A stretch of DNA of 64,000 nucleotides from sequence record OR699282.2. One strand, 5' to 3'. Within the stretch, counting starts at the first letter, position 1. Each line of letters begins with the position of its first letter. A program made the translations under genes and the position numbers. Positions 58,961 through 59,128 of the stretch are shown in pieces. Under the pieces are notes generated by a model. It was given only the letters and a program-made list of their open reading frames with translations, made no database searches and was not told the origin of the DNA.

Positions 58961-59128
58961 ATGAAAGATATTTTTACAATAGATGCTAACGTTATATATG
59001 ATTTTTATCTTACTGGTGGTGTAAAGGTAACGGGTACTGTGATTGATGTTTGTGATAATGGTATAATCTTAAGTGATGGCACTAGAGTTGTCCAAACACA
59101 CATCATTATGTTTGTCCCACATGTATAA
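58961..59128 (+). CDS. 55-aa Hfq/Sm-like protein (not in ORF track)
   Basis: [55 protein letters not shown] aligns by eye with the Hfq Sm1/Sm2 motifs; RBS weak. Confidence 0.55.

Follow-up and report, generated by a model that had tools for sequence, protein, structure and literature searches.

The LSm domains of EDC3 and Scd6 use the Sm fold to bind peptides rather than RNA, and do not form rings. Hfq is a central post-transcriptional regulator of the hosts of the phages considered here, and its borrowing by a phage was shown in 2026 for T4, in which a hexamer of host Hfq temporarily plugs the gp13/gp14 neck and so acts as a second gate for the genome (PMC12929587). We analysed a stretch of 64,000 nucleotides (nt) from sequence record OR699282.2 (hereafter, the window), which carries a small open reading frame (ORF) at 58961-59128 on the + strand, next to the ribonucleotide reductase gene nrdB. 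A preliminary description, made from the sequence alone, had called the product an unannotated Hfq/Sm-like micro-protein and had proposed that it is an RNA chaperone or a subunit that poisons host Hfq hexamers. Comparison with relatives shows that the small ORF is a genuine, conserved gene under purifying selection, and both sequence comparisons and structural models point to Hfq as the nearest known relative of its product. We tentatively favour the reading that this protein is a minimal, acidic, helix-less Sm-type barrel that would act by protein contacts, and not as a classical small RNA (sRNA) chaperone.

Conservation, predicted fold and sequence relation to Hfq

Over the segment 57786-60561, identity is 100% with Escherichia phage BAU.Micro_ELP-22 and at least 96.7% with PBECO4, 121Q, SP27, G17 and others; from its identity to the PBECO4/121Q group, the window comes from an Asteriusvirus, a Rak2-like jumbo myovirus of E. 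coli. A tblastn search in relatives, which the preliminary description had proposed as a check, found the ORF conserved, as a single copy per genome, in 71 phage records, all from the Rak2-like clade, with identity down to about 30%. The carriers belong to the genera Asteriusvirus, Alcyoneusvirus, Eneladusvirus and Mimasvirus and to unclassified relatives (Munch, Hallingskeid), with hosts in Escherichia, Klebsiella, Salmonella, Erwinia, Serratia, Pectobacterium, Yersinia, Cronobacter and Xanthomonas. An open, collinear reading frame is present in 14 genomes, dN/dS is 0.14-0.38 (non-saturated pairs), and the differences at codon positions 1, 2 and 3 are 0.47, 0.36 and 0.62, respectively (3 > 1 > 2). 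Coding on the opposite strand, by an ORF of 57 amino acids (aa) at 59005-59178 (-), was considered and rejected, given that the open stretches there vary from 33 to 87 aa and that the codon-position pattern fits the + frame.

In a profile search of 1.84 billion representative proteins, 27 clusters were matched, and the short ones all had the family pattern, which indicates that the family is confined to the Rak2-like phage clade. A single-sequence protein search with the ORF returned four close clusters, and single-protein queries for related loci returned six. The family profile also matches long bacterial proteins (P0026, P0021, P0024, P0025, P0029), several times each, in segments of the form G-x-V-x-x-hydrophobic-D-x-N-x-I-V-L-x-D-G-x-x-I-P; one of the proteins, of 2403 aa, has 10 matched stretches, and another, of 192 aa, has three units in tandem. 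Possibly, these long matches are cellular repeats of a related beta-hairpin/barrel unit.

The gene had been described as unannotated, which is wrong. The protein matches PHROG 17251 ('membrane protein') over its full length (E = 1.1e-31, residues 1-55 vs. profile positions 5-59 of 62), and most GenBank and RefSeq relatives are annotated as a hypothetical or membrane protein, the annotation of the ORF being missing in RaK2, the GenBank copy of K64-1, phAPEC6 and slurp01.

Two AlphaFold2 models were obtained, one from a 7-sequence alignment (model 1; predicted local distance difference test, pLDDT, 87.4) and one from a 26-sequence alignment (model 2; pLDDT 93.4, predicted template modelling score, pTM, 0.75). 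Both show five strands, at residues 12-17, 22-31, 34-37, 42-44 and 48-53, in a strongly bent small beta-barrel. The N-terminal helix had been called short; the region is indeed 3 residues shorter than in Hfq, but no helix is predicted in either model, residues 1-11 being coil. In a Foldseek search of the PDB, the top 50 chains were all Hfq (template modelling score normalized by query 0.70-0.76; root-mean-square deviation about 1.0-2.1 Å over 45-48 columns, 23-33% identity). A VIA-align scan over 48,161 PDB representatives, independent of Foldseek, gave Hfq as six of the top seven chains (Z 8.2-7.6), one of the six being the Hfq chain in the neck complex of T4, 9lu5 (Z 8.0). The ranks below Hfq were taken by an Hfq-like protein from Methanococcus and then mainly by Sm/LSm/SmAP proteins; BirA-C and a designed SH3 barrel had Z of about 7.0-7.1, and YaeO/Rof had Z 6.7. 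When model 2 was searched, 47 chains had Z of at least 8, nearly all of them Hfq, with 55 residues aligned and 22% identity to E. coli Hfq.

Among the top matches in the Swiss-Prot part of AFDB, 27/30 were Hfq and 2/30 RimP. The AFDB clusters and the ESM Atlas returned a mixture of Hfq, Hfq_1, LSM, DUF2642, DUF6897, RimP_C and BPL_C, the feature search of the ESM Atlas returned only unnamed, DUF6897 and DUF2642 clusters (scores ≤ 0.90), and BFVD returned the CBB orthologue along with many unnamed small phage barrels. The assignment to an Sm/SH3-type small beta-barrel class is robust for a prediction, and the preference of the models for Hfq above other small barrels is consistent, with a small Z margin. 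The earlier Sm/Hfq-like call thus agrees with a predicted Sm-type barrel for which Hfq ranks at the top in the PDB, by two aligners, and in Swiss-Prot.

At the sequence level, an ungapped comparison of phage residues 16-37 with Hfq 25-46, read by eye, gives 7/22 identical positions. The preliminary description had claimed matches to both Sm1 and Sm2, quoting E. coli Hfq peptides that are correct against the Hfq sequence; the Sm1 match is this 7/22 stretch and stands, whereas the Sm2 match (11 vs. 12 residues) needs one gap for both the H and the P to be kept, and the H in question, H47, is found in only 6/26 family members, K being the commonest residue there. BLASTP of the window protein against E. 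coli Hfq gave 36% identity over 39 aa (E = 0.007, for a single comparison), and the Smith-Waterman score was 41 vs. 21.3 ± 4.1 in 5000 shuffles (p = 0.0016), with p < 0.05 for 14/26 members of the family. A Pfam scan of the window protein matched no family at E ≤ 10. The profile search of PDB sequences yielded only non-significant matches (E 0.1-1.3), 23/31 of which were Hfq, via beta1-beta2.

We further compared the 26-sequence family profile with a 9-sequence Hfq alignment, assembled from plasmid and phage tblastn matches (E. coli, Azospirillum, Cupriavidus, Acetoanaerobium, Leisingera, pXO1, B. thuringiensis, a gut phage and a Staphylococcus jumbo contig). Alignment with hhalign paired beta1-beta3 of the family with Hfq (P = 3e-4 over 29 columns). 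Compared with 300 column-shuffled Hfq profiles, the local score was 25.0 vs. 9.7 ± 2.3 (maximum 17.8), and the global score was 18.3 vs. 2.5 ± 2.2 (maximum 12.9). The global alignment, with a 3-residue deletion in the helix region, set the family motif K/Q-D-I/V-F (KDIF) against Hfq Q8-D9-x-F11 (QDPF). Homology of the family to the Hfq/Sm lineage is probable but unproven.

Hfq surfaces and the possible roles of the protein

Several features of Hfq are kept in the family: G20 (Hfq G29) is present in 22/26 members, G25 (Hfq G34) in 24/26, and the hydrophobic core, I48 and the Pro at the end of beta5 are retained as well. The residues of the RNA-binding sites fared otherwise. Hfq F42 is replaced by G34 of the family, which is invariant, Hfq K47 by D39, and the distal Y25 of Hfq corresponds to Tyr in only 5/26 members. 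The rim arginines R16/R17/R19 are absent, the N-terminal 12 residues holding 0-2 Lys or Arg together with the conserved acidic D3 and D/E8. The YKH motif (Y55-K56-H57) is not conserved, in agreement with the earlier remark that the RNA-binding YK residues are changed; the loop reads Q-T-H in the clade of the window and P-T/Q-D-K in most members, and the proximal uridine site (Q8, F42, K56, H57) is not reproduced. The family is also acidic, with a net charge of -1 to -7 and an isoelectric point (pI) of 4.0-6.0 in 25/26 members, vs. a net charge of +3 and a pI of 9.7 for the Hfq core. Among residues that are candidates for the surface, conservation is highest in an N-terminal D-I-F-x-F-D/E-P motif and in the beta4-beta5 loop, and, judging from Sm topology, both patches would be on the side that corresponds to the proximal face. 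N-G and D-G pairs, which are also conserved, typically form hairpin turns and may have a structural role only.

Given that the surfaces that define it are missing, a classical Hfq-type chaperone is unlikely, and the lost RNA-binding residues, the lost rim arginines and the acidity of the family argue against the chaperone role proposed in the preliminary description. The barrel core and the Sm1 glycines are retained, the RNA surfaces of Hfq (the rim arginines, proximal F42/K56 and distal Y25) are gone, and a conserved acidic surface, comprising the D-I-F-x-F-D/E motif and the beta4-beta5 loop, stands in their place. From this combination of lost RNA-binding surfaces and a conserved acidic surface, we infer that a degenerate Hfq-like adaptor or mimic is the most likely identity of the protein. 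Candidate partners would be the Lys/Arg-rich tail of the 77-aa protein encoded next to it (see below), host Hfq, or proteins that dock on Hfq.

This reading, which we hold tentatively, has to be set against several findings that count in the opposite direction. K or H occupies position 47, in the beta4-beta5 loop, in 20/26 members, and an aromatic-x-Asn pattern occurs in 14/26 (position 31 is aromatic in these 14/26, and N33 is N or D in 25/26), so that an Sm-type uridine pocket could survive. Several eukaryotic and archaeal Sm proteins are acidic, and acidity does not exclude RNA binding. The fold itself is a prediction in which the Sm1-like motif may pull AlphaFold toward Hfq; a Z of about 8 can be reached by unrelated small barrels, and the SH3-type domains RimP-C and BirA-C score only slightly lower. 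Pfam scans of 26 members (13 in an earlier scan) matched no Hfq or LSM model at E ≤ 10 and no meaningful family. The public RNA runs that contain this sequence are uninformative on transcription, being strandless wastewater metatranscriptome/metagenome contigs that probably hold DNA.

The surviving residues bear most directly on a bona fide phage RNA chaperone, that is, an Sm ring that would bind the U-rich 3' ends of terminator-ended transcripts, or a phage non-coding RNA (ncRNA), in a pocket formed by the beta2-beta3 loop (aromatic-D-N-G) and the beta4-beta5 loop (T/Q-D-K/H). The Hfq-like fold and sequence fit such a role, as do the frequencies at positions 31, 33 and 47, and at least one putative structured RNA of the phage ends in a terminator. 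However, the protein has neither rim arginines nor an N-terminal helix, F42 has become an invariant Gly, the window protein itself has Cys at position 31 and the loop QTH, each protein contains only 1-6 K+R, with the negative net charge noted above in 25/26 members, and the N-G/D-G conservation might reflect structure only; a chaperone of this kind is, in our assessment, unlikely. Less probable again is the other proposal of the preliminary description, a dominant-negative subunit that would co-assemble with host Hfq via the beta4-beta5 edge strands and disable the mixed hexamers. Hfq is the closest protein in fold (22-33% identity), the barrel is kept while the RNA-binding residues are lost, and the Escherichia/Klebsiella phage clade keeps V-Q-x-H-I in beta4/loop5 (cf. 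V-Y-K-H-A-I of Hfq), all of which would suit co-assembly, but the edge at which subunits pair is changed both by Pro44 in beta4 (18/26 members) and by a beta3-beta4 loop that is two residues shorter, and the family varies widely, whereas its enterobacterial Hfq target is nearly invariant (88-100% among the matches listed). It is similarly doubtful, if somewhat less so, that the phage makes its own minimal Hfq ring shorn of RNA binding, either as a T4-style replacement of the neck gate or as a decoy; the decoy would disable host Hfq or capture its protein partners, possibly together with the 77-aa protein. Taken by itself, a stand-in for host Hfq in head completion, at the gp13/gp14 neck, seems very improbable even with the T4 precedent (PMC12929587) and with PDB 9lu5 among the fold matches. 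T4-like late promoters occur in the Rak2-like phages, which are large myoviruses (PMC5259590), and a plug requires no RNA-binding residues, but the gene lies in the replication/nucleotide module and not in a morphogenesis cluster, lacks a late-promoter motif, and encodes an acidic protein, whereas in T4 it is an acidic part of gp14 that contacts the basic face of Hfq (PMC12929587); in addition, a brief search matched T4 gp14 nowhere in the window, and no Rak2-like phage was found among the tblastn matches listed (40 rows).

The remaining alternatives deny the kinship with Hfq. The protein could be a generic SH3/Sm-type barrel with a convergent likeness to Hfq, for example, an accessory factor of ribonucleotide reductase (RNR) or of replication proteins. 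The compressed range of Z values (8.2 for Hfq vs. 7.0-7.1 for BirA-C and the designed SH3 barrel), the mixed ESM Atlas neighbours (RimP_C, BPL_C, DUF6897, Hfq, Hfq_1), the Pfam scan without a match and the strictly conserved adjacency to nrdB are compatible with convergence. Nevertheless, we consider it improbable: identity to Hfq is 22-33%, compared with 8-15% to other barrels in the same searches, the profile-profile score exceeds those of all 300 shuffles, with a collinear N-terminal QDxF-like motif in the alignment, and synteny is generally rigid in these phages, which would make the adjacency weakly informative. A small membrane protein, as the PHROG 17251 description, several GenBank records and RefSeq would have it, is hardly credible. 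The hydrophobic content is high, but the confident models are all-beta and globular, there is no membrane-spanning helical segment, and the best 19-residue Kyte-Doolittle mean is 0.5-1.6, in stretches that contain Asp, Lys and Gly. On these models, the 'membrane protein' label is very probably wrong.

The nrdB locus and other elements of the window

The features of the locus, all on the + strand, are as follows.

57786-58910, +: nrdB, small subunit of class Ia ribonucleotide reductase, the upstream gene (from the ORF list and annotations)
58923-58949, +: terminator-like element of nrdB, a hairpin at 58923-58941 followed by a T-run
58950-58952, +: weak Shine-Dalgarno (SD)-like GGG, 8 nt before the ATG
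58961-59128, +: the small ORF, from ATG at 58961 to TAA at 59126-59128, 55 aa
59133-59162, +: promoter-like site of the next gene, TTGGAA-N18-TATAAT with an extended -10 TG
59191-59424, +: 77-aa bipolar protein, PHROG 16437, always adjoining the small ORF

The small ORF lies directly 3' of nrdB in every relative examined, and the coordinates and signals agree with its earlier description as an ORF of 55 codons between the nrdB terminator and the next promoter. A hairpin follows the nrdB stop codon in 13/13 genomes, its stem sequence differing by genus (the structure is kept, the sequence is not); in the window, the T-run after the hairpin reads TTTTCTTAT, and the SD of the small ORF starts a few bases past it. 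The ribosome-binding site had been judged weak, which holds for this phage (GGG, 8 nt) but leaves out that a G-rich SD-like element (GGAG, GGA or GGG) is positionally conserved, 7-10 nt upstream of the ATG, in nearly all relatives. A TATAAT at 58953-58958, 2 nt ahead of the ATG, was considered as a promoter and rejected because it is not conserved in relatives, and we agree with the preliminary description that it is unsuited as the gene's own promoter. The small ORF would thus have no promoter of its own, starting 12-18 nt past the nrdB terminator T-run behind a weak, positionally conserved SD, and, as a promoter would not fit in the gap and the TATAAT is not conserved, it would be expressed only by read-through of the nrdB terminator.

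Just 3' of the small ORF, an extended -10 element, TGnTATAAT, is kept in 13 genomes, often with a TGAAAC-like -35. The 59133-59162 promoter fits the 'divergent RpoD-like' class that was described near DNA-synthesis genes for CBB and GAP32 (PMC5259590). In some genomes, the -35 of this downstream promoter must overlap the end of the small ORF.

The gene order nrdB, small ORF, 77-aa ORF, MazG-like gene was found in 13/13 diverse loci; in 11/13, a gene for a virion structural protein separates the 77-aa ORF from the MazG-like gene. The surrounding module comprises genes for DNA polymerase, helicases, primase, exonuclease, NrdA, NrdB and a MazG-like NTP pyrophosphohydrolase and, further, for DHFR, RNase H, a Dda-like helicase and topoisomerase II. 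The small ORF belongs to this replication/nucleotide-metabolism module of Rak2-like jumbo phages. The 77-aa protein, which is far better conserved than the Sm-like protein, has an acidic N-terminal half (net charge about -7) and a C-terminal tail that is very basic (net +12 to +15) and has an invariant NRK at its end. By its composition, the tail looks nucleic-acid- or partner-binding, and the acidic barrel and its basic-tailed neighbour may be regarded as a reasonable candidate pairing.

Some further observations concern the vicinity of the locus and its annotation. At 60566-60594, between the MazG-like gene (+) and a convergent 159-aa ORF at 60598-61077 (-), a 13-bp perfect hairpin was scored as a terminator on both strands and is probably a bidirectional terminator. 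Genes for a translation initiation factor-like protein and an ATP-dependent protease lie a few kb past the end of the window. In OR699282.2, at 226000-256000, many small genes of the replication module are labelled 'virion structural protein'. In Escherichia phage CMSTMSU (MH494197.1, UNVERIFIED), nrdA and nrdB are split into several short coding sequences and the 77-aa gene is truncated; these breaks probably reflect frameshifts introduced in sequencing or assembly, and not biology.

The preliminary description had also named an RNA at 9862-10345 as a plausible partner of the protein. The region 9736-10570 (~830 nt, between endonuclease VII and a 69-aa ORF/baseplate hub) contains only ORFs of 32-45 aa, mostly with TTG starts. 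Within it, the predicted fold of the 9862-10345 + strand has an energy of -131 kcal/mol (z = -4.0 vs. shuffles), and the strand ends in terminator-like hairpins, whereas Rfam and tRNA scans of the window gave no match. The segment is a fair candidate for a structured phage ncRNA; what links it to the Sm-like protein is the shared genome only.

Hfq-like proteins of phages and comparison with known systems

E. coli Hfq has no match among PHROG families. A tblastn search with Hfq against 50,697 phage records matched seven: two Salmonella genome contigs, two Acinetobacter 'phage' contigs from metagenome-assembled genomes, two records with the same Staphylococcus sequence, and one gut-phage scaffold. 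Only about three of the 50,697 are plausibly phage-derived hfq, and canonical hfq is, accordingly, almost absent from sequenced phages. The literature that we searched on this phage group does not mention Hfq or Sm-like proteins. As far as the models indicate, the family appears to be a divergent variant of the Sm/Hfq-like kind that is restricted to phages, carries a wrong label at present and is not described in that literature. It would offer a clean system in which to study the uses of the Sm barrel without RNA sites, the interference of phages with Hfq or its replacement by them, and the minimum size of a stable Sm domain; at the least, a propagated 'membrane protein' mis-annotation is corrected. 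Of the described families, PHROG 17251 includes the small ORF as a full-length member, its functional label being contradicted by the predicted all-beta globular fold.

Comparison with Hfq (PF17209; PDB 1hk9, 3qhs) shows that the two share a five-stranded, strongly bent Sm barrel, as predicted for the phage protein (root-mean-square deviation about 1.1 Å over 47 residues), together with the Sm1 glycines (Hfq G29, G34), an N-terminal Q/K-D-x-F motif and a beta5 that ends in Pro. Unlike Hfq, the phage protein is about 55 aa long, lacks a C-terminal tail, a predicted N-terminal helix and the arginine rim, is acidic, goes undetected by Pfam, and is found only in one phage clade. The LSm domains of EDC3/Scd6 (PDB 2vc8, 5lop) resemble it in having an Sm barrel without an N-terminal helix (Z 5.9-6.4), and they also occur among the weak sequence matches; they are, however, eukaryotic, lie within larger proteins and are 12-14% identical, and no homology is claimed. 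Rof/YaeO (PF07073), the inhibitor of Rho, is likewise a small, acidic, Sm-like barrel, and one that acts on a protein, with Z 6.7, below Hfq; direct kinship with Rof/YaeO was considered and rejected (hhalign probability 0.8%; Smith-Waterman p = 0.83, with a score below the shuffled mean).

In the T4 neck (PMC12929587; 9lu5), an Hfq-type ring serves a large myovirus in a task other than RNA binding, and a putative ring of the phage protein might by analogy do the same. The Hfq of the T4 plug is host-encoded and basic, whereas the small-ORF protein is phage-encoded, acidic and the product of a replication-module gene.

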